The position numbers and the translations under genes are program-made. Positions 2,761 to 64,000 of a stretch of 64,000 nt of DNA are shown here, one piece after another (position 1 is the stretch's first letter; every line of letters starts with the position of its first letter). This DNA is from Neoechinorhynchus agilis (taxonomy: Eukaryota > Animalia > Acanthocephala), in contig CM121343.1 of assembly GCA_051530055.1 (NCBI GenBank), positions 5,364,389-5,428,388 of the forward strand. The letters run 5' to 3'. The notes beneath the pieces were generated by a model. The model was not told the DNA's origin and made no database searches. It worked only from the letters and a program-made list of their open reading frames with translations.

Positions 2761-2790
2761 TGGCACAACGATGCTTGCAATTCATATGAT

Positions 2791-8450: not shown

Positions 8451-8675
8451 ATACTTTCTTTTGGTAATTTTGCCATCCCGGGGGGATTAAGTTCACTAAT
8501 CTATATTTAACCGATATTTCGCCTCTCGGATAATTAGTTTCCTTTCATTTAGTTCCAAACAATGGCAAACCTCAGGGGGGAATGTCAGAATTATCCGAGA
8601 GTTGAAATATCGGTTAAATATAGATTAGTGGAGTTAAATTCCCGAGGGGTGACAAAACTAAGAAAAAGAAAATAT
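8451..8675. mobile_element. MITE-like element with long terminal inverted repeats
   Basis: Core arms 8494-8535 and 8589-8630 are 40/42 complementary, and weaker complementarity extends to ~85 bp. No coding capacity. Confidence 0.75.
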
Positions 8676-19832: not shown

Positions 19833-19875
19833 TCTCAATATTTCGTCCGTCTCGTCAAACTTCTTCAGGCTTCTT
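19833..19875 (-). ncRNA. Degenerate hammerhead-like motif (Penelope pLTR type)
   Basis: CTGAAGA-A-GTTTG-acgaga-CGGAC-GAAA-TATT. Stem II and a palindromic stem III are plausible, but stem I is only 1 bp. Confidence 0.3.
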
Positions 19876-20378
19876 GTAATTTTTTCTAGATGATAAAAAA
19901 GATTTCTGCGCGATCCTAGTATTTTCGTGACGCTAGAATTTTAAGCACTTTTTTAAATGCATTCTAAGCAACAATGCCACTTTCATTAGTTCAAATGAAA
20001 GTTTTCATTCTCTCGATATCACTCGACTTTTAAATTTGCAAAATCTCGAAAGTGTAACTTAGTCAAGTCATGTATCCGTCTCATTTATCGTTCATCTTTC
20101 AAAATAAAGTTATATTTCCCTCATTAGTTTTCATCAGTTCGGAATGATTTTTTAATCTTTGCGCCGGCACCCAATTTACTCAAAAACCAATTGGATAATC
20201 TTCTACGTTCCTCCTTGAAAAGGGGCATTGTATGTAACGAATGCGCTTATTGTGTGCAAGGGTTAAATTAAAAAGATTATCTTGTAAATTGCCACTTGAT
20301 TTTCCAGCTGCGTGATTGATCAAGTCTTGTTTTTAAATTGACACTTGTGTGAGCTGTTGTAATGATAAAGAAAATCGT

Positions 20379-20960
20379 TATTTTCGAGTTTTCGCCGTTT
20401 TACGGCTTCCTCAGGAATCTACAAAGGCGCGTGAAGTTCTAAAGTGTGTTAAAGTAGCAACATCGAAGTGTGGAAAGTTCGTCTTACTTTTTTGAGCAGT
20501 TCTAGGGCATTGTCGAGCTGGTGTCCAGTACTCTCACTTGCATTGTCCGCAGAAACACCTTCTCCTTCAAACTGCACAAGATAAAAGCAATGCCTCGGTG
20601 ATAGATAGTTTCAGCGGGTCCTTGGCCACAACCCAAACTCGAGTGGAGAGTTTTACTACTTTGTCGCTGTAACACTCTGAGTGGTATTTTTCCCATGGTG
20701 TGGCCATGATTTTGCATCCAGATTCAATGCGTTGCGAACGTGTCCCGTAAGAAGTTGACGCGAAGGCCGTTCATTTTTCCCGATGTGCAAATGGCTGACA
20801 AGATTTGATTCGCACTCAAAGCAACGTGGACTAGGAGATAACCTGCGAACGATGTTTGGCCGCTGACAATCGCGGAGTCATCTACATTTTCAAAACTGAA
20901 CGGCTTTTGCGTCGGCGAAAGCTCGAAAATAAAGATTCTCTTTATCATAACAACAGCCCG
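20379..20960 (-). mobile_element. Degraded Penelope-like element 3' end: GIY-YIG endonuclease remnant followed by a hammerhead motif
   Basis: Frame-broken CFECESNLVSHLHIGKNERPSRQLLTGH and VVAKDPLKLSITEALLL, then downstream TTC-CTGAGGA-A-GCCG-taaaa-CGGC-GAAA-ACTC-GAA at ~20423 down to 20379. Confidence 0.65.
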
Positions 20961-20984
20961 CCCGAGTGCCAATAAAAAATTAAA

Positions 20985-21170
20985 TTCTCAATGGTGAATT
21001 GTTACACACTCGAGCTTTATTATTGAAATCTTCATTGTGAATTTTCAGGGCCTCAGCCTCCTTCTCAGGCATCCATTTTTAGATGCTTGAGAAGGAAACT
21101 GAGGCCTGAAAATTTTAATAATAAAGCTCGAGTGGTTAACAATTCACCATTGAGAATACACATCCACCCG
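20985..21170. mobile_element. Palindromic element 2 with hammerhead-like motifs on both arms and an 11-bp target-site duplication
   Basis: Arms 20984-21073 and 21082-21157 are inverted. AAAAAATTAAA occurs at 20974-20984 and 21171-21181. Homologous to 59816-60013. Confidence 0.8.
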
Positions 21171-21830
21171 AAAAAATTAAACTTGATTAAAAAGATGGGT
21201 TTAGTTACGTTTCCACTCCATAACTTCTATACTTAACTGATCAATGCTTAAAGCTCAATAATTGCAAAGCTCGTTTTAAAGAGTTCAAACTCTATAAAGC
21301 CACTATTTTTCTTTAGGGGTTTCCATCCCAGTACATGCTATTTCCCTCATCCATATGACAAATAGTAAGCGTTGAATCTTAAAACCAGTATAGCCCACCT
21401 TTACTTTGAGAGTTTTATGCGATCAAGCAATATATATGGGAATCCGACGTAACTACAGTACAACTTTGAGAATCCAAAGGTTATGAGGGACCAAAGATGA
21501 ATGGGTCGTTTTGTGCATTTCTAATAAAAGGTGTGATATTATTAAACTTGTAACAGTTCAAGATCAGTAATACATTAAAAGTAATTTTAACTAAAGTGTC
21601 GTATGCAATAGAACTGTCACTAGAAGTATTATTTAGATCTTCACCCGAACTGATTGTGTGTGCATATCAGTACGAAGTTAAACTAGCAACTTCTACTTCT
21701 GCAGCACGCGATTTAGGACGGGAATAAATTTAATCCCAAAAAACTGAAAATTAAAGCTATAACGCTCTTGTGTATACGGATTCACCTTTTATAGGTGATG
21801 ATATTATGGGCAGTATTGCCAATGATGAGG

Positions 21831-24800
21831 TTACCAAAAGGGACACCATCCAATATAGACTTGACACAAGTTTTCACTAGTTACAGCCTCCCTTATGAGT
21901 TTGTCTACTTGTTTTGTATGTGGAAGCTTTGTTGGATTTGAACATGGTGCAGTTATAGACAGGGATCCTTGGCAGTCTGTAGAAAGGCAGCAGCAAAAGT
22001 CGCGCCCACTCAACTTGTCCTTCACTCGGTCCACAATAGCGATTGCCTTGGCATCCAATAGATCGGAGTTGTCGATATCAATCGCGTTTATATCCTCAGT
22101 GGATTGTTTTTGTTGATCTGTATTCGCTTTCATTCCAAAGGGTAATTCCAGTCTCATTTGCATATGTGATACAGTTTGAGGGTTGTTCAAAACATCAGCT
22201 GCTGGACTTTCAGTTAAGGTCTTTTCGATATGCGTAGATACCTTTGTCCCGAATACCAATTTCTTTGGTGTAAGCAATCTCCAGCTTATGACAGGATCGT
22301 AAACAAATGCTTCTAAAACAGCTAAAAGGTTGTCTCGGTGCATCCGAAGCACTCTCATTACTGTTTCACATGTTATCCGAAATGTTCCGTCCAAACCGGT
22401 CACTTCCATAGCTCCAATAAGCATACGAGTCAAACGGAATGGAACAGTCTCTGGAAATTTCTCACGGTTTATAGCCACTTCAAAGCAGTCACCAAAGTCG
22501 ATGTGAACTACCTTCCCAGATGCCCGGTTGATCATAATATTGGAAGGATGGCGGTCTCCGAGCCCCAGAATATAACCAACCATACTCATTACGGCTAACG
22601 AGCGCGTAAAATTTGACCTAAGGAACGCATGGTTCGATATCAAGTAGCAATAACCCGCCATATCGATCAAATGCGTGTTTACGAGCACACCAGTTCTCCG
22701 CCGTCGAACTTCTCTGCCAAAGAATACAAGCCAAATCGTCGGAATTAGTTCGATGTAGGATTTGCTCAAAAATTTCAACCTTTACAATCAAAGGTCGACT
22801 TTCGAAGTCTGGGCAAAAGAGTTGCATCATCTGATGCTCTAGGTTTATGCGGATATTGTTGCCTTCACGATACTCCTTAATCAATGAGTGTAAAGTATCA
22901 CAATGAGGGACCCAACCAATTAATCCGTTATTCGGAGCCAAGGGAATTGTTGAGTAACGGCAGATTGACAAATCATGAATGTGTTGATCTTCGGATGATA
23001 ATAGAATATTGTTGATCAAATGAAACAACTGCATTACTCTTTGATCTTGTCGAATATCCTCATGACCTTTTAGTAAGAATTGATATTCTTCACCATTAGA
23101 TCCGAATATATTAATTTTTCGAGGGCGTTGCTTTGATGCAATTATCTCAACTTTAGGGCTAAACCCACGAATAGAAATAACTTCGCCGTGTGATTGTGCG
23201 ATGCCCGCCAATTTCGGTGCGCCATAAGTAACCGATGATGGATTATATGTCCCTGGCACAGCCAATTCCAAATCTTTACAGTTTAGAAGTTTAGGCGAAA
23301 CGTATTTCAGATCAAGAACTGTAATTTCCCGAACTTGTTGTGTTATCTTTTGAAAAACATTGTAATACAGGTTCCAAGAATCACTTAACTCTTGTTGATC
23401 ATGTGAGACTAAAAAGCGATTATGTTGGATCATCTCAAGTCTTTAAAGAATGAAAATGAGATAACACAATTTAATGAGAGTGTGTGCTCTACAAAGATCA
23501 GGACCATAGATATCTATGAAATTCTTTTCCTTTTTGGTCTCAGCGCCTTTCTCAATCATAACGTGCAAGGGTTCCAAGATATCGAAAAACCCGTGAACAC
23601 TACCTCCATTAAAGTACATTCTGCTTGCTTCATCCAAAGCCTCTTGCCACTGCTCATGCCACAGAACAGATATTCTTATAAGTTCTTGACTTACGAGCAG
23701 CGCTTGCTCCACCAATTCCTTCGAATGTTTACACATATCGCTTAAGACCTCATTTGCAGCTTGACTTCTTGTTGAAATATTTGACTTGGAAGTTACGGCT
23801 AACGGGTAAATGAGTGCCTATAACGTTAATATTACGGACTGAGAACATTGTAATGTATCTAACCTGTGGATGCCTTTTCCCCACCTGTATAAGGATTTTT
23901 TGAACGCTTTCACGTACTTTACTTTTGATACAATCGATCCGTGCAATCAATTGAGGAATTACCTAATTCGCTGATTTCTTAGGTTAAATATAGGAAAAAC
24001 ATACCTGAAGCCAAGCAGTTTCAGAGATCTGCAATTTACGTTCATTTATTTTATCCGCGACGCTATCCTCGTCCCCAAATTTGAACCAAACAGTCAACAG
24101 TCTATTAGTTTTTAACACACACATGAAACAGCAAATTATACGGGTTATTTTTACCTTAGTAAATTCTGAAGTTGATTTTCATTCGAGAGTAGCACGGACT
24201 CAAAGAAGTGGTCGATCGCTTGGGCAGCATATCTGATCATTTGTTTTTTCGACTTTATTATAAGATGATTGGATATCTTAAAAAGTGGCACAAAAGTTAC
24301 CTCTCGTCCATTGACGGTATTATTTTCACTTTGCTTTTTATAATGAATCACGAGATCATAATTAAATGATGCCATGACGGAGTGTGCCTTGTAAGATTGT
24401 CGATCACACTTGATAGAATTCTCGAAATACGTTTTCGCTCTTTCGACGGTTGAATCACACAACCCATGAACTTCGATCAGCCACGAGCCGCATTGCCGGC
24501 TGCAGGAGGACAAGAGGCTTTGCTTTGAACGAGCATTGTTCTCGTTTGAGTTAGAATTGTGTTCATGTTGAAGGTTACGCTGTACTTCACAAGTAAGATA
24601 CTGAGTGAGGTTTTTCATTTCCGTCAAAATTGCTTCTCGTTCAGATATCTTTGCATTATGCCAAGCTTTCTTTAGATAGGCATATGCTGCGAATGGTCGA
24701 TCGAGTGGAATTTCATGTGAGGAATGTGGCTGCTTTCCCAAAAGATGGGCAAATATGTGACTAGCCTGGTTCTAATTGTCGATGGAAATGAAATATCTAT

Positions 24801-33919: not shown

Positions 33920-36900
33920 TTATTGATTCTTGTCGGTCACGTAAAAGAAGCAGCTCCGGCGGCCAGACAGCTACTGATAGTAGCCTGTCAACGCGGCGTC
34001 GGTGTGCCGCTCCACTTGGTGATGCGACAACGAACAGGAGCAACAAAATCCACCAGTGCAACGGGAAAAAGCGAGGGCGTCGTAGCTCTCGCCGATGACT
34101 TGAGCGTCGAAATGTGCGAAACTGTCGCCGAAGGCAACGAAAGCGTCAGTCGAAGTTCATCACTGTGGTGGGTACGGACTGTTCAGGTGGCGCTGACAGC
34201 CGTGAGCCCTTTGGCCCAGCTATTTCAGATAGAAGAGGACTACGAATCGGATCCTTGAATTGTAGGAGTCTGCGAGCGCAATGGCGTAGGGGAACCCTGG
34301 CCAAATTGGCAAGGGACGCCAGAATGGATCTTGTGTTTTTACAAGAATTGCGCATAAGAGGCCAGACAGACACAGACGTAAATCAGGAGGATTTTGGAGG
34401 AGGCTGGTTATTATCTTACCTATCTGCGGACAGTCGAGGAAATGGAGGTGTAGGCGTTTGTTTATCACCCCGCCTCCGAAACTCAGTATTATAACTGACC
34501 GAATCCTTTGTGTCAGCATAAAGCTTCGGTCGAGAAATCTCTATGCTTTTGGCGTATATTCACCAACTTCATCGAAAGGTGAAGAGGCGGTTGAAGGATT
34601 TTATGGAAATCTAGCCGAAGCATTAGATGATGTACCGAACAGAGACACCCTCCTAATAGCCGGTGACTTCAACGCGATTTTACCGCATTCCGAAAGATCG
34701 CTATATGTGTTGAAAGGCGCGAATCGAAACAGCCGGTACTTGATTGAGGCGCTGGAGCGGCATGATCTCGTGTCTGCTAACACTTTATTCCGGAAGCGTC
34801 CGTGGCGTTTGGCGACGTTTATGGGTCAAAAGAATCCGTCCAAACATGCCATGGGAAAAAAATCCAAGAGACGCTTAGCTCAGCTTGACCATATATTGTT
34901 GAGACGTAGGGAAAAATGTCGGGTCAAAAACGCTGACACATTCACAGTTGATGGACTGCGAACCGACCACAAGTTGGTGATGTGTCAGTTGAGCATGAGT
35001 GACTCGTTGTTCCGTACACCTCAACATCCTCCACGTCCGTTCTATGGCGCCCTCGCTAATGAAGAGAAGAGGAAAGAGTTCGATATCGAACTAGAGAATC
35101 AACTGAGCTTGATGCCAGCTGCTGAAACGGATATTGATTTTTATTACAAGTTAATCTTCGACGCAGTGACCGAAGCGGCCGAGAAAACCCTCCCAGCAAT
35201 GAGGCGTATAAAAGCTGCAAAGGTTATATGGCAGGAGGACTGTGAATTTATGGCAATGGCTGAGCAGATCAAAACTCTAAGAAAAAGAGAAAACGATCTG
35301 AGGCTCGCATTGCAAGTCTTGAACTTGCCAACCTCTATAATGAAAAGCAAAAGGCTTTGATAGAGGATGCAGTTCGTGGGATCGCACACAACGAAGGTTT
35401 TGTTCGTACCTCCTTAGCATGGAGAGCGATAAACACTCTCACAAGAAGATCCCAAAGACAGCCAACTTTGATTGAAGGTCCCTCCCCGGAAATCAGAAAA
35501 AAGAGAATCGCAAATTATTTTGCGGAAATTCTCGATTCGCCATTATCGTCTTTGGAAGTGAGTCCTGCACTTCCAAAAGGCACAATCGTCCCAAGCATTA
35601 AGGCATACTTCACTGGACCGCTTTCCGTAAAGGAAGCGATTGCTGCGGCGAAAATGATGCGTGCGGGACGTGCATCAGGCCCAGATGGGATAATGGCAGA
35701 GGTACTGAGGTTTGAATCTATTGCCAGAAAAATCATACCGATAATGAATGGCATAATGAATGGTGGCTCAGTACCTCAAATCTGGCAAACGGCACATTTA
35801 ACAATGATCCCAAGAAATGCTGCTCGACAAAAGTGGAGGACTACAGAGGTATATCCTTGATGTCCAACACGGCAAAACTTTTCAGCAGCATTTTGAGACG
35901 CCGAATTCAGCCAATCCTCGAACCGTTTCTAAGAATTGAACAGAACGGCTTCAGGAAAGGTCGAGGCACCACAGAGCACATATTGGCTTTGAGGAGGATC
36001 CTCCATAAGGCACGAATTCATCAAACGGATGTGACGCTGGTATTTGTTGCTTTCCGTCGAGCTTTCGATTCGGTAAATCGAACGATGATGTGTGGTATCT
36101 TAAAGGAGTATGGAGTGCCGCCGATCATTGTCACATCCGTTATGGCATTATATAAAAACACGAGGTCCGCCGTAAAGACAGCGGACGGTTTGACAGAATA
36201 CTTTTCCACCACTTCATATGTTCTGCAGGGCGACACATTGGCTCTTTTCCTCTTCATCTTGGTGCTTGATTGGGTAATGAGATGGGCACTACCGAATGAT
36301 GAAGATGGATTTCTTCTGTTGGGGAAAAGAGGTCGTAGGTATCCTGAGATACGCGCCTCCTACATGGCATATGCCGACGACATCGTATTGATGTCCTCAA
36401 CAGTCGAAGGAGCTCAACGCATGCTAAATAGGCTGTGCGAGAGGGCGAGGACCATCAACTCGAAAAAGACGGAATTCTTGACGATTCCGCATTTCGCGCA
36501 TACAGTCTCTGGCGAAGTGCCGAATGGCGTTGAGCAATTAAAACAGATAGAGCGGTATGTCTATCTGGGAGTTGTCGTTCCTGAGGTGAGCGTGGATGTC
36601 AGCCGACGGAGAGCTATAGCTTGGAGAGCAATGGGGCAACTTAAACCACTATTTGACCGTGAGTCTTCACCAGATGAACTCCGTTCGCAGCTGTTCAAGA
36701 CTCTAATTGAGAGCATTCTCTACTACAGTGCAGAGACCTGGACACTGTCACCAACGGAGACGAGGCAGTTGGACCAAAATCATTCATCTCTCTTACGTGC
36801 GGCGTTCAAGGTCAGATGGTCAGATAAAGTGACCAACAAAACACTGTATAAGAGAGCCGGAGTCCAACCGCCCAGTGAATATTTGCGCCGCAGACGACTG

Positions 36901-37165
36901 CAGTTCACGGGCAATATAATTCGGTCCGAGGCATCTTGCCCTCAGGTCGTGCAATAGTTCCTTTTCTGGAAGCCAACGACATTGTATCGTAAAGGCAAGG
37001 GGAACTGTCGTACATACGATGACCTGATTTTAAGAGACGCGAATTGCCCGCATAACAGGACTGCTGTCGTGTATTTTAGATCCCTTGCGGAGTCTAATTC
37101 TATTTGACGGGCTTATACCTACGGTGCAACGTAGAAAAGTACCGCTGCATACAATACAATACAAT
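33920..37165 (+). mobile_element. Near full-length RTE-like LINE (AP endonuclease + RT), inactivated by frameshifts
   Basis: APE motifs: GSLNCRSL, FLQE, GNGGVG, YSPT, AGDFNA, LDHIL, TDH. RT motifs: GPDGI, YRGISL, QNGFR, AFDS, LQGD, YADD, YLG. 3' (ACAAT)3 tail at 37151-37165. The 5' boundary is approximate. Confidence 0.9.
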
Positions 37166-37548
37166 CTTCCTAAATAATCAAATGTGTATCTTGCACCCTT
37201 GTCGCGGCTTTAACAAGGGCAAATATGTGCATTCCGCTCTCGACTGATATTTATTCGAAAATGAAATATTTAGCAAGAGGAAACTTGGCCTCATCAACCA
37301 TTTTTTGAAAGTTATTACAACGTATGTTCGTCTACTTTCAAGCGATGATTTATAAGGCGAGGTTTCTTCTATCGAAATATTTCATTACAACAAAAAATTA
37401 TTTCTAACCGGTTGATCATATCTTCAACCACAAGTCAAAACTTTTTTGTTTGAAATTTTTAACTCATAGTACTCCTGCGATGTACTATGGTTAGGCAGAT
37501 CATTGTTATCCTTCTCGGAATATTCCTTCTTATAAACGCCGATCAGAC

Positions 37549-39359: not shown

Positions 39360-39562
39360 GATCGCGCTCGAATCAATTTAATAAGTGGATGATTCACGAG
39401 AATAGTATCAGATGCGTTGCTTTCCGGGATTCATCCGGATCGCAACTCGACGAGGAAATAACTTTCTTGTGAAAAATTCCGTCTCTCTGATGTAGTCCTT
39501 AGAACGCGAATCACTATTCAGCGTGGTGTGACGTCATCTGAAGTGACAATAACGGAAGAAAC

Positions 39563-40733
39563 ATGGCCAGCTTTTTAGAAATTAAATCATGCGAGTACGT
39601 GGACTTGGCCTTTGGGCTTGGATCACACGAGGCTCTGTTCTTGATCACGAAAACCCTCTTCATCCCCAAGTTCCTTTATGCTCTACGTACTGCGCGGTTT
39701 TTCAATCACAAGGTTCAGCTTGGCAAGCGAGATGACAGATTGAAGGACTGTCTCGAGCAAGTTTTAAATGTCCAGCTGCCAGAAGAGGCATGGCGACAAG
39801 CATCCTTGCCTGTATCTTCTGACGGGTTAGGCATCCGAAAAAATGCAGACATATCCCTGCCCGCATTTTAGGCTCTTATCAGGGAAGCGCAGTTCAGCGC
39901 ATTTTAAAATCTACTTATCATCTTGGGAATCAGTGAGTGGTGTAAACTGACCAACTCCGATCAAGTACCTGTGAATGACCAAAAACAATCTGTGTGGGAT
40001 CGACCTCTCGTCGCAAGAGTTCAAAGCTCTCTCTTATCAGACTCAAGCGACGACGTCAGTGCCAGGTTGTTGGCAGTCTCCACTAGAGAATCCACGGCTT
40101 CGCTGGCATCCGAGGGTACTCTCCGACGAGGCTGTACGGGTCGGAGTTTCAATGAGACTGGGACTACCGATGTGTCATCCCCACCGTTGCCGCTGCGGTG
40201 CAAATGTGGATTCGTCGGGACTTCATGGTCTCATCTGTAGAAAATCAGCCGGCAGATTCGCAAGACATGCCGAAATTAACATAGCGCTGAGCCGGGCACT
40301 TGTTGCGCGGGAAATAGCCCAATTGGAACCTGCCAACCTCTGTAGGGACGACCTGCTTAGACCTGATGGGGTGACCGTATTTCCGTGGCGGGAGGGTAAA
40401 TGCCTCCTCTGGGACGCCACTTGTGTCGATACACTCGCGGCTAGCAATCTCAAGTTCTCGGTGGTTCAAGCTGGAGGTGCAGCGAGCGCTTCGGAAGGAC
40501 GGAAAACGGCAAAATACCTCGATTTAGCCAATGTGTTTGCACCTTTTGGGGTTGAGACCTACGAATCTCTTGATTGCGAGGCTCCTCAACTTCTGAAGGA
40601 TCTGAAGCGACGCCTTCAGATTACAACTGGCGATGCAAGGCCAGGTCAATACCTGGTTCAAAATATCAGCATCGCCGTGTTGAGGGGCAACACTGCAAGC
40701 ATTCGGGCGACAATTGAGGACGAGGACGGCTAG
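39563..40733 (+). mobile_element. CRE-clade non-LTR retrotransposon, 5'-truncated and frameshifted (RT thumb + CCHC + RLE)
   Basis: HEALFL, LP...GLG, CRCG..HGLIC, RH, RPDG, WDATC, KY, PFGVET, SIAVLRGN. Confidence 0.85.
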
Positions 40734-43273: not shown

Positions 43274-43662
43274 TTTTGTTAGACATTTTATGCCTTTTTA
43301 AATGGTTGTTAGATTAACTAAAATTTTTGTTTTCATTGGTCGCAGCAGACAGTTTTTGCGTTCACTTCAACAAATCAATTACATTTGATATACGAGAAAC
43401 ATTGAATGGCGTTAAGGATAATATATTCTGAAAATAGGCGGTATATATTCGTTATTTGGAAATAAAAATCATTCTTTTGAGCGGACCAATTAAGCTGGCC
43501 AACAAAAGGCTAAAGAAAGATCCTAAAACGCAGATAATTAAGTCGAAAAAAAAGTCGAGTATAAATAAATTTAAAGCGCATTACCGAATGAGATTTTTGA
43601 AAGCTTTATTCTTTTGCCAACTTCGTTGATTTTAAATATCCTCTGTTTTTTCACATTCTCAC

Positions 43663-44985
43663 ATGGCGGATATAATGCAGTCCTTCGAATCCGTTGCCCC
43701 AGGAATCCGATTAATCAACCGGCAAAGCTTCACTCTTCTCGGCAGTTGCGTCCTGGATGCGAACATAGATCGCGAGATTGAAGAAGAGCTCCCTAAACTG
43801 GATCTTTTGTGCTCCCGCGTTCAAGAATTGAATGCACACGAAGCTCTCTTCTTGGTGAGAAACTGCCTATACATATCGAAGCTTATGTTCAAGATGAGAG
43901 CAGCCCCGTACTTCCGACACACCAAACGTCTCCTTGACTTAGATGGTTTGATGAAAAAGCATCTTGAGAAGGTAACGAACTGCGCCATCACTGATGAAGC
44001 TTGGCAACAAGCTGTCCTTCCGATCAAATACGGAGGTTTAGGCTTACGAAGTGTGGCTGGTTTGGCCCTTCCGGCATTCGTATCCTCGATGCACAAGACG
44101 GAGGAATTACAGGGGGAAATTCTTTTAAACAGAATGCCGAAGCCATGCAAACTATTGAAACAGGGAGTCACATCATGGCTCTCGCAGACCGGTCTGCAAC
44201 AAACTCCAACCAACGCGCACGAACAATCTGCTTGGGATAACCCCTTAATCCTGACGGCTCACAACAAACTAAAAGGCCAGATGGACGAGATGTCTCAAGC
44301 TAGACTTGTGGCCAGTTCCTCGAATGAGTCAGGCGCATGGTTGAACCTTTTGCCAATTGGTACTTTGGGACCTTTGCTGGACGACGAGACAGTTCGAATA
44401 GCCGCCGCTCTACGTTTAGGACTTCCAACCTGTGCCCCACACCAGTGCCGATGTGGAATAAAAGTTGACGTGCTCGGGAGACATGGACTCTACTGCAAGA
44501 GATCGAGCGGTCGTTTCCCAAGGCACGCAGAGCTCAACGCGATCATTAGCAGAGCTCTGAACTCGATACACGTTCCAACCATCCTGGAGCCCAATCACCT
44601 CTGTCGCTCGGATGGTAAGCGTCCCGACGGTATAACCGTTTTCCCTTGGAAAGAAGGGAAGAGTCTAATTTGGGACGCAACATGCGTGGACTCACTCGCC
44701 ATGTCCAACCGGCAAGATGCTTTAGCGGAGACGGGAGGAGCAGCGAGTGCCGCCGAAAGGAGGAAAGCGGAGAAATACAATGAGCTCAAACAAAATTACA
44801 TTTTCCTTCCTTTCGGCGTGGAAACACGAGGGGCGCTGGGATCTTCGGCACGAAGCTTTTGTGCCGAACTCGGACGACGACTTGCAGCACAAACAGGGGA
44901 GCGACGCGAGAGGACTTTCCTGATACAAAGAATAAGCCTCGCAATCCAACGAGGAAATGCGGTCAGCGTCCGGGGGACGATTTAA
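43663..44985 (+). mobile_element. CRE-clade non-LTR retrotransposon, 5'-truncated, with an uninterrupted 440-codon 3' ORF
   Basis: LLGSCV, HEALFL, LPIKYGGLGLR, SGAWL, CRCG..HGLYC, RH, RPDG, WDATC, KY, PFGVETRG, SLAIQRGN. Confidence 0.9.
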
Positions 44986-51276: not shown

Positions 51277-51499
51277 CTAAAACGCAGGACTAACACGGTG
51301 TATTCCGAAACAAATTAATAAACAAAATCGATAATTTTATTCTGGTCAGTATCGAAACTAAAATTGCAGTATATCAAATCCTGTAAAATGTGCGTCCATC
51401 AATGCAAACACAAACAAAATCAGTAAAACTTAAAACATTATATCAAAGTTGCTTTTTCTAGTATCAGTATACTAAATAGTCCAATCTTAAACCACAAAT

Positions 51500-52525
51500 T
51501 TCGGTGCTGTGCGAACGAGTTGATGAATTATCTTCACACGAGGCTCTGTTTCTGACCAAGAACACCCTTTTTATTCCAAAATTGCTGTATAAGCTGCGCA
51601 CAACGCCCTTTTTTAGACATAAGGATAAGCTGGCAAAATTAGACGAGACGGTGAAAGCCTCTCTCGGGAAAATTTTAAATACTCAGCTATCGGACGAGAC
51701 CTGGGGTCAAGCGTCCTGGGTTTTCGAAAAGCAGCCTATATTTCTCTGCCAACTTATTTGGGATCGTATGAAGCAAGCCGCAAAATAGTTCAATCCGTTC
51801 TTGGTGAGAATTACACTGGTGTGGAGATTCAGGCAGCGAACAGGTACCCGTCAATGGTTGCAAAAAATCAGTTTTATTCTTATCACGTGGTGAACCGAAC
51901 TCGATTGACGGCACTCTCTATAAGAGAATCAGATGCTTGGCTCAACGCTCTCCCAATGGCTTCTGTGGGTACCCTTCTCTCCGACGACAAAGTAAGGATT
52001 GCAGTGTCCCTGAGACCTGAGGTACCGATGTGCACATCCGATCGCTGCCGTTGCGGAGCGACCGTAGAACCATCGGGACGCCATGGTCTCATCTGTCAGC
52101 AATCAGGAGGGAAGTAATCACGACACGCCGAAGTGAATGAAAAGAGCCGAGCAATCTTTGCCGACTCAATGGCCGTAGACCGGACGGTGTCACAGTATTC
52201 CCGTGGCGAGGAAAATGCCTTCTTTGGGATGCCACATCCGTGGACACGCTCGCAGCCAGCAACATAAAATTCGCCACTATTAAACCAGAGGGAGCAGCAA
52301 CCGCCGCTGAGGAACGCAAAAGGACAAAATACAGGGACCCAAGTCGAAATCATTGATTTGTTCCCTTTGGCGTCGAGACAATCGAGTCATTTGGTACCGC
52401 GGTGCAGGACCTGGTCAAGCAATTGTCAAAGCGATTGAGAAGAATCGCTGGCGAACATAGAACAGGAGCATTTCTCCTACAAAACATTCCGTCCTTTCGA
52501 CCGTTACACCAGGACGGCAGTTGAG
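51500..52525 (+). mobile_element. CRE-clade non-LTR retrotransposon fragment, frameshifted
   Basis: SHEALFL, SDAWLNALP, CRCG..HGLIC, and frame-shifted RPDG/WDAT/PFGVET equivalents. Confidence 0.85.
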
Positions 52526-54611: not shown

Positions 54612-56199
54612 TCAGTTTTGTGATGAATTGACTGGTTCTACATAATTGTATGGAAAATGTCCTTGCCTTAAACCGATTGATCCCGTCCACCAAGATCCTA
54701 TTCGCTTTGTAACATTAATAAGCTGCCCTTTGGAGAAACTCAGGTCTCCTGTTACGTCTGAATTAAAATCGTACAAGGCTCTATAGGTTTCGCTACCGGT
54801 CGTTTCGTCCTGCATAACTTCATCGGATCGCTGAGTATAACAAACCGGAAAGAGCCCTAATCGATCGTTCAATCGACCTACAAGCCAATCCTGTTTGAAA
54901 CCTTGAGGATTGTCGGTCGAACTAGCAGTAATAACATCATTTCTTTTGAAACTCAAATCTGTGCTAAGTTCCGAATCGTAATCAAACATTGCAAGAAAAT
55001 TAAACTGCTTTTCCTTATCAGAAGAAGAAGGTGGAAGTGGTGCATTGTGCTTCTTTTTTGGAGAAGATTTCTGCAAGGACAGTTTCGGCGATAAAGAACG
55101 AGGATTGAGATTTACATCGAGCCATGAGGATACATCATCATCAAGATAAGAATCAAACGGGTCATCGGCGAGAAATTTGTAGCTGTCAGTTAAATCGGAT
55201 AAATTTGGGTATATGGCATTGTTTGGTGGAATTGTGAGCTGTTCGTTGGTGGTGACAGAATTAATATCTTTCATAATTGCGTTTTTGGGTCGAAGTTCGT
55301 TTAGAATTGATTTGATACTGTCATCGCAAGATCGCTGATTGATTAACTCGATCATTCTGTTCTCAATGTTTTGTACTTCTTCTTTTAAATTCTGTTCAAC
55401 CAAAACAGCTGAATTCGCGTCAGCCATATCGTTTGAATCGGCGACCTGATCAATCTCCGTCAATATCTGTTGGAGTTCAACTTTCATGTCAGCGACGTTT
55501 AGATCAACATCATTTTGCATCCGTATGAGTTGATCGTGTTTAGTATGAATTGCATCTTCTCGCTCTTTAATTAGCCATAGGTTCTCTTGTTAACCACACA
55601 GAGAATCCATGGTTCACCCCGATTTCATAATCAATTGCTTTCATTCTTGATTCTAATGAGCTGATTTCTTTTTGAAATGCGCTTACTCGCTCGTTCAGTT
55701 CGGTCACGGACGCCGACCCACTTGCTAAAGGTTTGTTACTCCCATCGAAACCAAATATCAAATAGGCAAACTTCTCAATTCGTTTTCGATTATCGCCATC
55801 AATTATTGATGGCGTTTGCGTTGGTTGTATATCTTGAAGTGAACCGTTAAAATTAGGACGTGAAGATTGAGCTCGATGCTTCGGAGGTAGTATAAAGCCA
55901 GATTTGACGAGTTCAGCAAAATACATGGCATTCGCGAACTCACTTCGGCTTAGCCGCCCATCTTGATCTTCATCGGCATATTCCCAAATAGTCGCTAATG
56001 AAGCAGCGGATAATTTAGTCAAATTGGTTAATACATGACGAGCTCGAGTTCCAGCTAAATATCGGGAATCACTCGAATCAACAAATCCGTCAAATAAACG
56101 CTCGTACTCTATCCGTTTGATTGCGCTAAGCCTCGTAGATGGACGGAGAATGTCTGAATCGGGTAGTAATGCATGCGATGACGTAGAATAATTTCTCAT
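54612..56199 (-). CDS. Minimal intersectin-like adaptor (EH + coiled coil + 2 SH3)
   Basis: EH domain YERLF...LATIWEYADEDQDGRLSRSEFANAM; SH3 motifs AMFDY..DLSF..DW..GLFP and ALYDF..DLSF..WW..GHFPYNYV. A 34-nt intron lies at 55584-55617. Confidence 0.8.
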
Positions 56200-56349
56200 T
56201 TACCAATAAACCGTGTACTCTGCAAATGAATTTTTGCCTTAAATCTTCGATAAAGCCTAACCCAAACCACACAGTCACCCCATCGAAACGATGCAAGTCG
56301 CGAGAAGCGTAACCAAGACTACAACAGCATTCCTTTAAAATATTAAAAC

Positions 56350-57330
56350 CGCCGGATTTGCCTTTATGTGTCTTCCGTAGCTTGAATTCACCAATCACGA
56401 GCAAAAGGGAAGCAATCTGCTCAGAACGCGGAATGCAACAGGGTGACCCCCTCTGACCAATAGGCTTCTCCATTGCAATCAATCCATTGGTGAGGTCATT
56501 AAAATCGAACTTCAACGCGTGGTACCTGGACGACGGCACCCTGGGAAGCGACCCTCTCTCTATTCTGGTTGATCTTAACCGCATCATCGAGATCAGCTCC
56601 AAGATGGGCCTCGAGTTGAACAGCTCAAAGTGTGAATTGCTATTCCTGAACATAGACGAAACAGAAAGCTCGCAGGTACACGAGCAATTCAAAAATGTCA
56701 ATCCGAGTATCAAACGAATCAATATTTGCGACTTCAGTCTCCTGGGTTCATGCGTTTCCAAGGAGAATGTTCCAAAGGACGTAACAAATATCTTTGAGGC
56801 CCTGAGTTTACTGTGTGAGAGATGTTCAGAGTTAAAGTCTCACGAAGCCGAGATCTGCACCCGCCTTCGCGTGCAAGAATGATCTATCGAGTTTGGATGA
56901 TCTTCTTCGGAATAAGCTTAGCCAAATCGTCAATATCGATTTCGACGGTTCCCCGTGGGAACAAGTGACGTTACCCTCTAACTACGGAGGTTCAGGACTC
57001 ATGGAGGACGTCGCATTGCCGGCCTCTCTTTCTTAGATTTCGGCTAGTCGAGAGAACTCGCTTGAGGTCTATCCGGAGTCCAACGAATAGCATTTTAATA
57101 ATGCTCTCTCCTCATGGACCTTTAAAGTAGGACAAGCCACAATACCCCAGAAGTGCAAAAAGCAGTCATCGTGGGACTTACTGATCGTGCAGAAGGTTCA
57201 CAAATCACTTCTGGACCAACTGGACAAGAGGTCAGGTTCGCGACCCATGGCTTGATCTACGAAGGAGTCCGCCGCCGGGCTAGAAGCTATCCCGGCCGAA
57301 AAGTTGGGTACTCTTTTGGACAACGAAACA
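56350..57330 (+). mobile_element. CRE-clade non-LTR retrotransposon RT-core fragment, degraded
   Basis: GMQQGDPL, AWYLDDGTLG, LGLELNSSKCE, LLGSCV, SHEA. Confidence 0.85.
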
Positions 57331-57393: not shown

Positions 57394-58550
57394 CCCCCGA
57401 CCGGAAATTCTCACCCGAACGAACTTCCTCCTACCGGATATTCCAACCCGAACGGAATTCCCCCGATCGGATATTCCAACTAGAAGAGACATACGCCGAC
57501 CGGATATTTCCACCCGAACGGAATTCCTCCGATCGGATATTTCCACCCGAACGGACATCTTTCCGGCCAAACAGTCCAGCCCGAACGGACATCCCCCGAC
57601 CGGATATTCCCACCCGAACGGATTTCCTCCGATCTTTTATTCCCACCCGAACGGAATTCCTCCGATCGGATATTCCCACCCGAACGGACATCTTTCCGAC
57701 CAAGCAGTCCAGCCCGAACGGACATCCCCCGACTGGATATTCCCACCCGAACGGAATTACCCCGACCGGATATTCCCACCCGAACGGAATTCCCCCGACC
57801 GGATATTCCCACCCGAACGGAATTCCTCCGATCGGATATTCCCACCCGAACGGACATCTTTCCGACCAAACAGTCCAGCCCGAACGGACATACCCCGACC
57901 GGATATTCCCACCCGAACGGAATTCCTCCGATCTTTTATTTCCACCCGAACGGAATTCCTCCGATCGGATATTCCCACCCGAACGGAATTCCTCCGATCG
58001 GATATTCCCACCCGAACGGAATTCCTCCGATCGGATATTCCCACCCGAATGGACATCTTTCCGACCAAACAGTCCAGCCCGAACGGACATACCCCGACCG
58101 GATATTCCCACCCGAACGGAATTCCTCCGATCTTTTATTTCCACCCGAACGGAATTCCTCCGATCGGATATTCCCACCCGAACGGACATCTTTCCGACCA
58201 AGCAGTCCAGTCCGAACGAACATCCCCCGACCGGATATTCCCACCCGAACGGAATTCCCCCGACCGGATATTCCCACCCGAACGGACATCTTTCCAACCA
58301 AACAGTCCAGCCCGAACGGACATCTTTCCGACCAAACAGTCCAGCCCGAACGGACATCCCCCGACCGGATATTCCCACTCGAACGGAATTCCTCCGATCT
58401 TTTATTTCCACCCGAACGGACATCCCCCCGACCGTATATTCCCACCCGAACGGAATTCCCCCGACCGGATATTCCCACCCGAACGGAAATCTTTCCGACC
58501 AAACAGTCCAGCCCGAACGGAATTCCTCCGATCGGATATTCAAACCCAAA
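57394..58550 (+). repeat. GC-rich minisatellite, ~33-bp units (about 35 copies) with variant half-units
   Basis: Unit: CCCGAACGGA(ATT/CAT)C.. followed by one of CCGATCGGATATTCCCA, CCGACCGGATATTCCCA, CCGATCTTTTATTTCCA or CCGACCAAACAGTCCAG. Confidence 0.95.
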
Positions 58551-59049
58551 CGGTACAATGAACGTTTTTGGATTGGACAAAATACCGACGTGCTGCTCAG
58601 AGTCGTCTTTAAATATCTGTAATCAAAAGTGGGTTTGAACGCATACGCTAGCTGTAGAAATGAACTCTCTCTCTTGTGATACGCGTAGATCTGCGGTTCC
58701 AAAGTTGTTTGCTATCTAACTTTTGACATGGATAAATTCGTCATTAAGTCGAAGCTTTCAAATTTTTTTAATTATAGACGCTATTCGAATTCCTAATAAG
58801 CAATCAATTTTTAAGGTACTATTCGCCTGGTGCATCGGGAGTTTTTAATGTGTCAACAGAAATGAAGATATGAACATTCAAAAATTTATGTAATGGTGGT
58901 GAACATAATTCCGGTTAAAGAAGGATTTTCTTGATATGATTCAAACATTTCAGAAGTTTGCCCGCGTTCAAAACTTCTAAAGAGATTAAATGTGGCTTTA
59001 TTTTCATACAGTACTTATCTGAGAAATCAATACATTTGTGGTCAAGGTA

Positions 59050-62000
59050 CCAATAACTCAGCGTAAACATTGTTTACTTATCTACGCATGTCACTGATAG
59101 AAACAATACATGGCTATTGATTGGGACACATTTCATTTTGTACCATCCGTAGCATGCATTTTCAGCTACTAGCAGTTTCAAACTTTTGTTGAGCTTATAA
59201 TCTGATATCAACTTTGATATTGTATGATAAGATGCGTTTTCGACGTTTATACCATTTACCTCGATTATCCGGTCGTTTTGGCGCAATCCCGCTTTCATGG
59301 CCATTGAATTCTTTTCCACTGATGATATGACATTTGGTGCGATTTGTTGTATAGAAAATCCAATGCTCTTACGGGTTGTGCGGATTTGAAATACAGCGAG
59401 TCTTGGAATATATTGAGTAAAACATTGAGAAGGAGGTTGCTCATAATCAAAAATATTTAAATCTTCACCTTTTAGAACTCCACCTTTACGTTTGTAGTAT
59501 GCATAAGCAAGTTCAGTCAGCACAAGGACTTGCATCCGGCGGCGCGGTAAACAATGGCGCATGTAAACTTCAGGCCATTGGGGACCGTGCTGTTGAACAC
59601 TGATTCTATCAAACGCAAGGATCATGTCGTTCACTGCTATACCCGATCGATGAGCTGGTGAATCCGGGATAACCATATAAGCTTGTGTTTTTTAATACAC
59701 CAATGAATTCTTTACTATAATTTTTATTCTTTTATAATTGTTGTAAATACTTAAATTGTAGAGTAGTAAAGGTCAAGAACCTTTTCTATATTCAAATTTC
59801 AACGTTTAACATTTCCCTCAATGGCCTCTTCATTGCAAATTTTCAAGGCCTCAGCCTCCTTCTCAAGCATTGCTTGTAAGTTTTTAAATATTCGATTTAA
59901 AAACTAACAAGCAATGCTTGAGAAGGAGGCTGAGGCCTTGAAAATTCGCAATGAAGAGTTTAATAAAACTCGAGTGGGAGAACAATTCGCCATTGAGAAT
60001 ACACATCTACTCGAAGGAACAATTGGATAGAATTTAAAATTTCTTAATTTACCTTATTTTAGCTAATGGTAGTATTAAGAATGACAAGCATAAACGACAG
60101 GACAATCTGCGCTCGGAGCAGGACGTACTCTGAAACCCCAATCAGTAGATTCGCCTTGTAGACGTAATGTACAACGTCGAGGAACAGGTTCAATGGGATC
60201 TGTGGCAGCGAAAGTACGGTCTTGTGGTTTCTCAAGGCGATTTTTTTCCACATTGTTTACAGCGGATAGATCCGGAGTTGATGAAAATTTTGGTACATTT
60301 TTTATATACCGACTTCTTTTTACAATTAAACTGACCACAGGATCATTAGTTGAAAATTTTTTGAGTAGTGAAGATACAAATTGATTGGTATGATATTGTT
60401 GAATCGGAATATCGTTGATTTGTATAAGAACATCATTTTCGCGAAGACCAGCCTTCCATGCTGGCGAATCAGCGATTACGTTATCGATTAAGAATAATCC
60501 GCATTCGTATCGTTTCACACTCATACCCAAATCGATTGAATATTTGCCTAGATAGACATCATAATGATAAGTATTGGCAAACTCTACAAATGATGCTTTT
60601 CTCTCCTCTTGTTCTTTTCCATCTCCATTATCATTATCATCATTTTCGATGCCATGTTGAACCGTAGATACATCAATCATTGATTTCGATTTATTGTTAA
60701 CAGATTGATCTTTTAAAGTAGATTGTATGTTAACTGTCTTGAATCGATCATACGAAAAGTTTGAATCGACCGTATGCTCAACCAATACTCCAATAGTGTC
60801 GCTATCGCTTTTAAGATATGCTTTTATCTGACACTTATCCAATCCCCGTAGATCGATTCCATTAATTGAAATCAATTTGTCACCTACCACAATTCCAGAT
60901 TTTGCAAGTCTACTTTCTTTATTAATGCGAGTAAAATAAGAATACGAAGAAGCGCTGTCTGAAATGCAGTCGAAGTCGAATGAATCAGCTTCGGTTTGCG
61001 GTATCGTAATTTTTCGTGGAATCAAACCCAATGATGGTTGCGTATTGAAAGGTGTTACAGTATTAGCGATGAAAGTTTTGTTGGCGGAGGATAATACCAT
61101 TGTTAGTCGATTTTCTCGGTACTTTTTATTAATGAGATCCACAACGGAACCATTATCCAATTTACTTACGTCAACATTTGTCACTTGAACGATTCGGTCT
61201 CCTATTTTAGCAGTTCTCCAACTTAAGGTACCACCTCGTTACAGATCTGCAAACTGATGCCAACATCAACGTTTTCAGCCAAAGATCCTGGACTCACACT
61301 TTTTATCCAATGAATAAATCGGTTATCTTTTTGACTAGTTTCAACTTCGATACCGCACGTATGTTCGTTTTCTTCACTAAAACTTTTTCTCTCGTCGTTT
61401 TTGAATTTTGATGAACCGTAGCTTAAAAACCTCTTGGTTGTAATGGGAAATTTTTGTTTAACGGCCCTATAATTAGGCTCATTTGCAACAACGAGCACTA
61501 ATTGTTCGCAATCTAAATGATGCAATAAAATCCGCAATTCCGCATTAGAGTAGCACTCAGTATTTACCCCATTGATTTCCAAAATCCGATCGTCTATGCG
61601 CAGACCTACAAGACTTAGAGCATATCCATCGACGACTTGACTAACAACGTGCTGATTGTCGTAAGTTGTATAGAAATCAAATCCGAATTGAGTGGCGAAC
61701 TCATTTGGCTCACTTTCAGTCAATGGTTCGATGATTTGCGGAACCTGTTCACGATAACTCGTATATCCTTTGATGATTAAAGATGCCGTGGGTCTTGTCG
61801 GTTTGGACATTGATTGAGTAGTGACGAGAAGTGTCAGCAATCCATGAGCGGATTTATCCTTCATCGCAGCTTTAATTTTGTCGACCACAAATGCATGAGT
61901 ACGCGCTTCAACGTTGATACCATCGATTTCAACCAATCGATCACCTGGTCTCAAACCAGCAATAAACGCATTTGAATTAGCTTCAACGCTTTCTATAACA

Positions 62001-62900
62001 TGTTCGCCATTACTAAGATAACCAAGACTAAATCCATAAGATACAGAACTGTCTTGCGGTAGGATAAGTTTACACAGCCTTTCGCCTCTCAGTTTTCGAT
62101 TCATGCGCTGTTTTGTCGTCAAAATAGTCAAATCAAATTTCTTTATTCGTTCCGCTGAGCCCACTGTCTTTAATATATTCTCGCCGTTTATCTCAACACC
62201 ATTGAGACAAACTACAATATCACCTGCATGCAAGCCAGCATACCAGCCAGCATAATTTGTCTTGACACTAACAATAAAAACCTTTTCTGAATCTCGTTCG
62301 CAGTCAAACAAAACGCCAATGTCATCTATATTAACAAATTGCACTCTTCTTCTTATATTGCCGTTAACATTTAGACTTGTGTCAGCTGTAGATGTCTGAG
62401 GAAAAGGATGTTGTAGCGGGAAAACTGCGCAGCCGTTTCGATTCGTGCAAAGGTTAACGTCTTCTACTTGAAATTCTGGAGAGTTTCTCTCGTTAATTTT
62501 CTGAAAAGAAGTTCCACATGATATCAATGCCGATGGTTCATGCTCGTCATGGCAAGTGGAGCTCGTTGGTACGTATTGTAGAAACTAGTGATTGTGCATT
62601 ATGAAAGCCGCAATCACTACCTTCCACCTTTAAGAAGAAAGTAGTAATACCAACGATTCGTCTATCTTATGATCGCTGATTGTATTCAATACATTCACAT
62701 ACGAGCATTGGCTTACGTCTTGGTCGCCTACTTTTAGAACTCGATCACCAGCCCGTACACCGGCATTATAGGCAGCTCCATCGACGTCTACATGACAAAC
62801 TGTGAATGGAGGACCGGATTGGTCAATCAGGAGACCGTATGTAAGATCCTTCGTAGATCTATTTTTGATTGAACACCTTTTTAGAGCTAGCATTTCGCTT
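59050..62900 (-). CDS. Multi-PDZ scaffold (about nine NHERF/PDZK1-type PDZ domains); termini approximate
   Basis: Repeated GF/GL...V..GS.A..AGL..(G/N/D)D.I..(I/V)NG motifs across ORFs 62630-63085, 61223-62527, 60075-61184 and 59074-59676, joined by GT-AG introns. Confidence 0.85.
59816..60013. mobile_element. Palindromic element 3 (same family as 20985-21170) in an intron of the PDZ gene, with hammerhead-like motifs on both arms
   Basis: The arms meet at the loop ATTCG (59890-59894). The right arm reads GCAATGC-TTGAGAA-G-GAGGC-TGAG-GCCTT-GAAA-ATTC-GCAATG (59911-59953). Confidence 0.8.
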
Positions 62901-63566
62901 TCTCTCTCTTCTATTATCAAAAGAGAGCTTTGTACAAACACGGGAACCGCTTGACCGTTTCTTATGCAAGATAGGAGCACCGTCGACGTTCCATCAGGAG
63001 AAGGTGTTATGAAGTCTACCTTCCTGCAAACATAGTCTGTCTCTGTATCGTGCTGCACTAAGATCACCGCCAGCACATTACACACATTCTGTCAAGACAA
63101 AACTGATCCCTTTCTTCAATATACAGTAGTCGCAGGAGGAGAACGCACATATCGTTTTGAGGGCAATGCTGAGTCTTTGGATCCTACCTACATTTTTGTC
63201 CTATCGTATCAAACACGTCCAGAGATCACCATTAATTTTTTAAAGCTTTATACAATCAAACTTCGCGAAAGTTGACCAGCTCACTTAGTCCATTTCAAAA
63301 TTTTCGTCTATAAAACGATAAAATCTCGTTTCAAGATTAATAATCCACCATTTTTTCTCTCTGTGTGTGTGCGTGGTAACTATTTTATTTTTCCAGCAGA
63401 AAAGAAACCTTATAACAGCCTTTGATCTCCTCTTTATCGAATTTCTAATGCCAACCATAGCTTTTTGCCATCAAAATTCCATTCTCAAAAAGAAATACTT
63501 GAGGATGCTTTTCTTTATCGCAAAGATCTAAAAGGCTACTCACGTTGATGAAATTAGATTATTCTT

Positions 63567-63887
63567 GTGATCACACTGCGATCAATACAGTTGAAGGCGT
63601 TTCGGAAGTCCCACTTCAGCACAATACAGGACTCTGAACTGTTTGTGACAAAAGAGCGAAGTGCATTCACGACAGCTTCGGTTCCGCAAGGCGTACATCA
63701 ACCCAGTTGTATTGGGCGGAAAAGTTCGCCGAGATCCAATAGCGATGGGACGAATCCTACCGTCTTTCTTTTTAAGGGCACAGAGTGAAGCACCGAAAAA
63801 CAATTGAATTGCGACGGGAGGCAATTCGTCACCAACGAACAGATCAACGAGGTGGGTCAACCTTTCACCCACGGAGAAGGACAGCAT
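63567..63887 (-). mobile_element. CRE-clade non-LTR retrotransposon RT N-terminal fragment
   Basis: FFGASLCALKKKDGRIRPIAIG, and in another frame LKWDFRNAFNCIDRS. Confidence 0.8.
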
Positions 63888-64000
63888 GTTTCGAAATCAG
63901 CAATACCAACTGCGTTTACGCGCCGATATTTCCCTTAACTCTATATATTATTTTTTGATTGTTACACTTATAAAGAGCAAATCTTCCTTGACAAAACGTT

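Follow-up and report, generated by a model that had tools for sequence, protein, structure and literature searches.

Inverted minimal hammerhead motifs of the Penelope type in a short palindromic insertion of the acanthocephalan Neoechinorhynchus agilis

A stretch of 64,000 nucleotides from Neoechinorhynchus agilis (assembly GCA_051530055.1, contig CM121343.1, positions 5,364,389 to 5,428,388 of the forward strand), referred to here as the window, contains a palindromic insertion, E5 (59817-60016, both strands), made up of two outward-facing copies joined head to head. With a probability of about 0.75, E5 is a short head-to-head retro-insertion of the Penelope-like element (PLE) type that carries a covariant minimal hammerhead and is an inert fossil at this locus. 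Judged by comparison of sequences, the E5 motif is a real Penelope-type minimal hammerhead, including the known U3-A8 covariant, and is not a new ribozyme family.

The right arm of E5 encodes the motif on the + strand (59912-59953). Helix I is formed by CAAUGC (59912-59917) and GCAAUG (59948-59953), with five of six positions paired and one A.A mismatch. It is followed by the core UUGAGAA (U3...A8, 59918-59924), an unpaired G (59925), helix II (GAGGC, 59926-59930, with GCCUU, 59935-59939, closed by the loop UGAG), GAAA (59940-59943) and a self-complementary AAUU (59943-59946). C17 is at 59947, with cleavage predicted on its 3' side. The left arm (59831-59872) encodes the mirror motif on the - strand, which is the sense strand of the host gene. 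It runs from 59872 to 59831, again has the unpaired G (59859), and has U17 at 59837, giving a predicted cut between 59837 and 59836. The UUGAGAA...GAAA core is present on both arms, with U-A as the 3-8 pair, and helices I and II are the minimum-energy structure of the isolated + strand 42-mer. An initial annotation of this DNA had described the motif and the palindrome, and its letters match the sequence exactly. It also placed the motif on both strands, and both arms do match the descriptor given below; because the element is an inverted repeat, these are not two independent observations.

The E5 hammerhead motif is not a product of chance. The descriptor requires helix I with ≥ 5/6 pairs, a YUGANRA core with C-G or U-A at 3-8, 0-1 bulged nucleotides, helix II of 4-7 bp with a loop of 3-8 nt, GAAA, a self-complementary A-N-N'-U and H17. 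It has three full matches in the window, the two E5 arms and position 2945 (copy E1, below), and one more, 19868 (-) in copy E2, when the helix I requirement is dropped. Dinucleotide shuffles of the window (n = 300) gave a mean of 0.0 full matches and of 0.02 matches without helix I, and there were no matches in 791 kb of unrelated real DNA. Rfam was silent: none of its hammerhead models (types I, II, III, HH9 and HH10) reached the gathering threshold for E5, and in E-value mode (601 nt, E ≤ 10) no hammerhead was returned, only generic long-hairpin microRNA (miRNA) models. The canonical-core copy E1, used as a control, likewise gave no Rfam hammerhead at E ≤ 10, so the silence is uninformative for loop-less hammerheads. 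The Rfam hammerhead models expect a helix III hairpin, and a non-match therefore says nothing about membership of the minimal class. Loop-less hammerheads are missed by the curated models as a whole class, and so go unannotated in new genome assemblies.

The minimal hammerheads of PLEs, as described by Cervera & de la Pena (2014; PMC4209133), have no loop 3 and a palindromic 15.2-16.2, and are expected to work only as dimers. In that study single minimal hammerheads showed no detectable self-cleavage and dimers had low activity. The U3-A8 covariant of C3-G8 was recorded in the Cercyon PLEs of Schistosoma mansoni, a species with about 1,300 matches, and paired motifs were found 100-700 bp apart on opposite strands. 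E5 and its relatives share with this class the type-I topology, the CUGANGA...GAAA core in its U3-A8 form, one unpaired nucleotide between A9 and 10.1, the lack of loop 3, the self-complementary 15.2-16.2 and an H17 that is not G. Also shared is the genomic pattern of many heterogeneous families per genome, mostly as solo or truncated copies with some opposite-strand pairs. There are differences. The 10.1-11.1 pair of E5 is G.U, whereas a G10.1-C11.1 closing pair is highly conserved in minimal hammerheads, outside the published descriptor (PMC4209133). Helix II measures 4-6 bp in the window copies but 7-8 bp in the families of S. mansoni. The window copies have no linked PLE open reading frame (ORF), and the two E5 motifs lie only about 40 nt apart across the centre of a perfect palindrome.

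The initial annotation was right to see a likeness to the hammerheads of Penelope pseudo-long terminal repeats, as the loop-less helix III, the extra G and U3-A8 are all published PLE traits (PMC4209133). For the same reason its proposal of a variant ribozyme family is not supported: every structural trait had already been described for PLE minimal hammerheads, and E5 therefore founds no new family. The "one extra G" that it noted is indeed present, but is a hallmark of the class and no anomaly; the unpaired nucleotide before helix II is A or G in all sister copies.

The window holds at least six hammerhead-bearing relics, E5 included. E1 (2791-3022) is a palindrome of another sequence family, with arms (2814-2885 and 2950-3021) that are 97% complementary. 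Its + strand (2939-2982) carries a minimal hammerhead with a canonical core (AAGUGA CUGAAGA A GGCC-AACGAAAA-GGCC GAAA AUU U UCAUAU), and the mirror hammerhead (2853-2893, -) has a 3-nt deletion in its core. E1 is flanked by a 12-bp target-site duplication, AATTCATATGAT (2779-2790 and 3023-3034), a 12-mer that occurs only twice in the window, and has a one-sided tail of 23 nt (2791-2813). E3 (20985-21170) is an older palindrome of E5's own sequence family and represents a second copy of the E5 repeat. Its - strand hammerhead (21033-21074) has C3.A8 and damage in helices II and I, and its + strand hammerhead (21081-21121) has a 13-nt deletion. It also has a one-sided tail (about 21157-21170) and an 11-bp target-site duplication, AAAAAATTAAA (20974-20984 and 21171-21181); this 11-mer occurs three times in the window. 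E4 (37259-37387) is an old palindrome of a further family with arms 77% alike, scoring 32.0 and 32.8 bits with the covariance model introduced below. Its - strand hammerhead (37259-37303) reads UUGAUGA, bulged G, GC(C)AAG/CUUGC, uAAA and AUAU, with 6/6 pairs in helix I, and its + strand hammerhead (37343-37387, UUuAUAA) is degraded.

The other relics are a solo copy and a spaced inverted pair. E2 (19831-19874, -; 31.1 bits) is a solo copy with CUGAAGA, a bulged A, helix II GUUUG/CGGAC, GAAA and AUAU; its helix I is degraded and AATAAA follows. E7 (20331-20420, -; 29 bits, E = 8e-4) consists of a hammerhead at 20380-20420 (AGAUUC CUGAGGA A GCCGU-AAA-ACGGC GAAA ACU C GAAAAU) and then a 3' region. 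Its inverted partner E7' (20890-20979, +) has a degraded core, GAAA-GCU-C (an AGCU palindrome) and AATAAA at 20928-20933. The two form an inverted repeat (20331-20397 and 20913-20979) of 67 nt, 84% complementary, around a 515-nt spacer.

A common plan is evident across these families. E1, E3, E4, E5 and E7/E7' are head-to-head pairs, and in every palindrome the ribozyme of each arm reads outward. An ACAAG box precedes the ribozyme in E1, E2 and E5. In E1, E2, E3, E5, E7' and one E4 arm, AATAAA follows helix I at a distance of 0-15 nt, and 10-60 nt of 3' sequence come after it. Helix III is self-complementary as AAUU, AUAU or AGCU, and at 10.1-11.1 both E5 and E3 have a G.U wobble, where E1, E2, E4 and E7 have G-C. 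Arm identity is 97-98% in E5 and E1, 93% in E3 and 77% in E4. This spread, together with the core deletions in the left arm of E1 and in E3, shows neutral decay of the copies.

Covariation across genomic copies, the check that the initial annotation had proposed, was examined within the window, where helix I, helix II and the 3-8 pair do covary. Seven sequences from five loci were aligned by N-padded hand registration to a hammerhead template, as MAFFT alone misaligned the copies across families. In this alignment 80.7% of cells were paired, compared with 61.1% in shuffles (0/500 shuffles reached 80.7%), and 7/13 pairs had changes on both sides. The covariation score reached 0.516; shuffles gave 0.230, and sliding the partners gave no more than 0.175. 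Helix II differs by family (GAGGC/GCCUU, GGCC/GGCC, GUUUG/CGGAC and GCcAAG/CUUGC), and the 2.1-1.1 pair is C-G, A-U or G.U. RNAalifold independently recovered helix II and the inner part of helix I. At 3-8 the tally is U-A three times, C-G twice and U.G once. U3-A8 had been put forward as the compensatory version of C3-G8, and this is borne out by sister copies with C3-G8 (2945, 19868 and 20414) or U3.G8 (37297). Taken together, the compensatory changes give moderate support for helices I and II in the genomic copies.

A covariance model built from the seven-copy alignment found nine sites of ≥ 25 bits in the window, among them both E5 arms (right 38.3 bits, left 40.1 bits; both seed members) and the E7 hammerhead (20380-20420, -), which was outside the seed. 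To the full descriptor matches the model added the sites 19831-19874, 20380-20420, 21033-21074 and 37259-37387. The best score in 598 kb of control DNA was 17.5 bits.

The boundaries of E5 are good to about ±3 nt, its ends having been set against the sister copy E3. An inverted-repeat search gave arms of 64 nt each (59826-59889 and 59895-59958), 97% complementary, around a 5-nt loop (ATTCG, 59890-59894). The full left arm (59817-59889; sense strand -) lacks a 30-nt segment with AATAAA that is present in the right arm (59895-60016; sense strand +; AATAAA at 59962-59967). Left-arm GAAGAG runs straight into GCCATTGAG, where the right arm has the 30 nt between GAAGAG and GCCATTGAG, and beyond this segment pairing resumes between 59817-59825 and 59990-59998. 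The right arm ends in a one-sided 3' tail (about 60000-60016; AUACACAUCUACUCGAA) that is common to the long arm of E3. As RNA, E5 folds at -121 kcal/mol (z = -16.9; 0/200 shuffles fold as well) into a hairpin with a stem of 64-73 bp. Every core nucleotide of the hammerhead is paired in this hairpin (-123.6 kcal/mol on the + strand, -129.5 kcal/mol on the - strand), compared with -9.8 kcal/mol for hammerhead helices I and II.

E5 probably arose from two copies, head to head and with each arm pointing outward, of the 3'-terminal part (about 100-125 nt) of either a PLE or a non-autonomous RNA that depends on PLEs. Each arm carries a sense minimal hammerhead (helix I, the Y3-U-G-A-N-R8-A core, an unpaired purine, helix II and GAAA), followed by a poly(A) signal and a short 3' region. 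The loop-less AAUU helix III can form only between two ribozyme copies. The palindrome was probably made in one event, either by the reverse transcriptase priming on both cleaved DNA strands or by snap-back of the cDNA at the short template's 5' end. E1 and E3 are each surrounded by a single target-site duplication, and therefore each palindrome went in as a single unit at one staggered break. One arm is 14-23 nt longer than the other in E1, E3 and E5. In the parent element the hammerhead, if it acts, would presumably give weak, dimer-dependent and possibly protein-assisted cleavage of multimeric transcripts.

PLE insertions commonly include 5'-truncated inverted copies that form inverted repeats, and only one of their ends bears a tail (Craig et al. 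2021, PMC8557442). Both DNA strands are cleaved and extended by the purified Anolis PLE protein, which starts reverse transcription at two internal sites bracketing the tail; insertion in vitro does not require the hammerhead, which acts as a protein-assisted ribozyme (PMC11167929). Like such complex PLE insertions, the units in the window show strong 5' truncation, an abutting head-to-head inverted copy, extension on one end only and, in E1 and E3, a single target-site duplication around the unit. Unlike them, the window units are tiny (about 190-230 bp in total) and near-perfectly symmetric with centres of 5-21 nt, their tails measure 14-23 nt, shorter than the 30-40 nt that has been published, and the arms of E1 and E5 start about 24-27 nt upstream of helix I, which hints at a defined 5' end. 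Micro-insertions with a single duplication and a one-sided tail fit the two-strand cleavage and extension biochemistry of PLEs, and could help to test it.

Animal non-LTR (long terminal repeat) retrozymes and Sm-alpha-like repeats are short, ORF-less and thought to be PLE-dependent, and carry type-I hammerheads that need dimers (PMC7229834; bioRxiv 10.64898/2026.07.22.740005). The window elements resemble them in being short, ORF-less and hammerhead-bearing. However, retrozymes form head-to-tail tandem arrays, have a canonical helix III and loops, and give circular RNAs. The window elements are inverted pairs or solo copies, and therefore do not offer two sense ribozymes per transcript as retrozymes do.

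Several points weigh against a PLE-type insertion with a covariant hammerhead. No PLE ORF (reverse transcriptase or GIY-YIG) was found among the ten transposable element (TE)-like ORFs of the window that were scanned, which included only a long interspersed nuclear element (LINE) with APE and RVT_1 at 34.3-37.0 kb; the attribution to PLEs therefore relies on motif type and insertion architecture. The tails fall short of the published length, and no clear target-site duplication surrounds E5. With E4 some 300 nt past the end of the LINE ORF, a link of these motifs to a non-PLE retroelement has a small probability. The E5 copy departs from the usual G-C at 10.1-11.1 and has the mismatch in helix I. 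The covariation alignment comprises few sequences and loci and, being registered by hand, leans towards the structure.

It is possible, though doubtful, that the palindromes of about 200 bp are no random debris but what a distinct class of non-autonomous RNAs regularly leaves on insertion, the RNAs being very short (about 100-125 nt), hammerhead-bearing and dependent on PLEs. Such an RNA would be copied to its defined 5' end, after which snap-back or two-strand priming would yield perfect head-to-head dimers with one duplication and one tail. E1 and E5, of different families, start at a near-equal distance upstream of helix I and both have the ACAAG box; the near-equal start suggests a defined 5' end of a short template and not random truncation. 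If this tentative account is correct, the copies would be natural records of PLE second-strand synthesis, and the palindromes would be a steady source of intronic long double-stranded RNA (dsRNA), and hence of small interfering RNAs (siRNAs) against the family.

E5 lies in a non-coding gap of about 400 nt (59682-60085, -) that is probably an intron of a multi-PDZ gene, with putative splice sites at 60085-60084 (GT) and 59683-59682 (AG). The ORFs flanking the gap have PDZ matches, and a PDZ domain is interrupted by the gap: once the ORFs are joined, the Pfam PDZ match grows from profile positions 32-60 to 11-60, which argues for an intron. The initial annotation had placed the copy in a host intron. 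This is plausible from the split domain, although in the public gene models one gene ends at 60075 and another begins at 59676, making the gap intergenic. In these models what appears to be a single multi-PDZ gene (59074-62972, -) is split at the palindrome gap into products of 965 and 200 amino acids, and the 200-amino-acid model begins midway through a PDZ domain (Pfam profile position ~32 of 81).

E5 has no ORF and no tandem partner, and as its two motifs are on opposite strands no transcript holds two sense copies. Any transcript through E5, host pre-mRNA included, would also contain the full complement of the motif, and a hairpin with a stem of about 73 bp would bury the catalytic core. 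The host pre-mRNA had been said to contain one motif. That of the left arm, with its U17, is indeed the sole sense motif, but the pre-mRNA would carry its complement too, and the motif is predicted to be sequestered in a hairpin of about -130 kcal/mol. With the motif buried and no tandem partner, the E5 hammerhead is most likely a catalytically silent fossil at this locus. For the host, the most probable outcome is a long dsRNA from the intron rather than self-cleavage; in practice, a hairpin with a stem of about 73 bp would be expected within the multi-PDZ gene, and not a self-cleaving intron.

Other explanations of E5 were weighed. That the locus is primarily a hairpin gene for small RNAs (an intronic hairpin RNA (hpRNA), an endogenous siRNA (endo-siRNA) locus or a miRNA-like precursor), with the hammerhead as a transposon leftover, is unlikely. 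Long inverted repeats are Dicer substrates in animals, E5 is probably transcribed within an intron, its stem of 64-73 bp folds at -121 to -130 kcal/mol (z = -16.9), and only long-hairpin miRNA models are returned by Rfam in E-value mode. Every one of these Rfam matches is, however, below the gathering score and to a generic plant-type long hairpin, and arm identity in the sister copies falls to 77-93% with insertions and deletions. As these copies decay freely, the hairpin is not being preserved; small RNAs are possible as a by-product, which is no competing account of origin. A miniature inverted-repeat transposable element (MITE) or foldback DNA transposon moved by cut-and-paste, in whose terminal inverted repeats the hammerhead-like string is irrelevant, is likewise unlikely. 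Like MITE/foldback elements and hpRNA/endo-siRNA loci, the window units are short, dispersed palindromes with target-site duplications that would give long dsRNA if transcribed. The AT-richness, the two same-family copies in 64 kb, the duplications around the whole unit and the lack of a linked retroelement ORF would suit a MITE. But unlike any of these systems they have asymmetric ends with a one-sided tail, a poly(A) signal after the motif, solo copies, and a conserved ribozyme motif across otherwise unrelated families, with no sign of hairpin conservation. At least four unrelated families share the same outward motif with compensatory helix changes, which a MITE would not explain, and neither would it account for the solo E2, the E7/E7' pair 515 nt apart, duplications that differ in length (11 and 12 bp), or a descriptor that never matches shuffled or unrelated DNA.

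It is very unlikely that E5 represents a new and active variant hammerhead family that cleaves the host pre-mRNA in the intron. The motif is real, U3-A8 is compensatory, one sense copy is on the host strand, and double swaps at C3-G8 are tolerated, activity being kept in part (PMC11167929). Nevertheless, every trait has been published for PLE minimal hammerheads, of which single copies had no detectable cleavage and dimers little (PMC4209133). Helix III, with four A-U pairs, depends on a second copy; the complete complement that the transcript also carries beats the ribozyme fold by > 110 kcal/mol; and sister copies have core deletions and mismatches. A chance match in a non-coding palindrome can be practically dismissed. 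The absence of an Rfam hammerhead at E ≤ 10, the departure of the core from CUGANGA and the damaged motif in E3, the family's second copy, would fit chance, but 0/300 shuffles and 791 kb of control DNA gave no match, independent copies have canonical cores and covary, and Rfam also misses E1. A chance motif inside a MITE, considered on account of the Rfam silence, the damage to E3 and the energetics of the hairpin, was overturned by the published traits (PMC4209133), the descriptor and the covariance model. A PLE-type head-to-head insertion with an inert minimal hammerhead is thus preferred.

The 30-nt difference between the E5 arms is a clean deletion (59960-59989 compared with the left-arm junction 59825/59826) and lies in the arm with the host-gene sense orientation. 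Loss of the AATAAA segment from this arm could reflect selection against premature polyadenylation of the host transcript. The reverse complement of the retained segment reads AUUAAA on the host strand, and for this reason no claim is made for such selection.

The E5 arms are open in 4/6 frames (59914-60030, +, and its mirror), with a coiled-coil-like reading (MLEKEAEALKIRNEEF...). It results from the GA-rich sequence of the ribozyme and does not represent a gene: the reading has no Pfam match, there are frameshifting insertions and deletions between copies, and no such product is on record. Protein searches for further genomic copies with concatenated six-frame translations of E5 gave nothing at E ≤ 10. 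Exact 19-mer scans of metagenome and prokaryote genome collections, with BLAST of the whole element against 127 loci, gave only chance matches of 20-32 nt.

E2, E7/E7' and E3 cluster within about 1.3 kb (19831-21181), 650 nt beyond the stop codon that ends a TOR-like kinase gene (ORF 21831-22778, -; FATC end ...IGWCPFW), and just 5 nt lie between the E3 insertion and the 3' end of E7'. The cluster suggests nested insertion, or a preference for sites beside earlier copies. A short similarity to E2 at 19062-19094 was too degraded to call. A further palindrome (8487-8637; 49-nt arms, 92% complementary, 53-nt spacer) contains GAAAUAUC-GGUUAA. It was considered as a hammerhead relic because of GAAAUAUC, but has no core and no covariance-model match, and was left unclassified.

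The LINE (34290-36954, +) is CR1/L2-like, with a weak match to an APE endonuclease and RVT_1 at E = 5e-21. In a protein search with its reverse transcriptase the best database reverse transcriptases were only 51% identical, none close enough to be another copy from this genome. The old palindrome E4 may lie inside the LINE 3' UTR or be an insertion of its own. Several ORF fragments resembling the C-terminal domains of non-LTR retrotransposons are found at 1427-2807 (-), 39542-40730, 43636-44982, 51480-52114 (+), 56129-56839 and 63585-63896 (-). They read, for example, ...RCRCG...GxHGLxC...RH..., and those scanned were without a Pfam match. One of them has E1 inserted at its edge.

A 1.16-kb tandem array (57394-58553) lies downstream of the last PDZ exon, at a distance of about 500 nt. 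It has about 35 copies of a 33-nt unit (CCGACCGGATATTCCCACCCGAACGGAATTCCT) and, at a higher order, periods of 133 and 166 nt. Several of its frames are open, which gives long spurious ORFs (423 amino acids and others).

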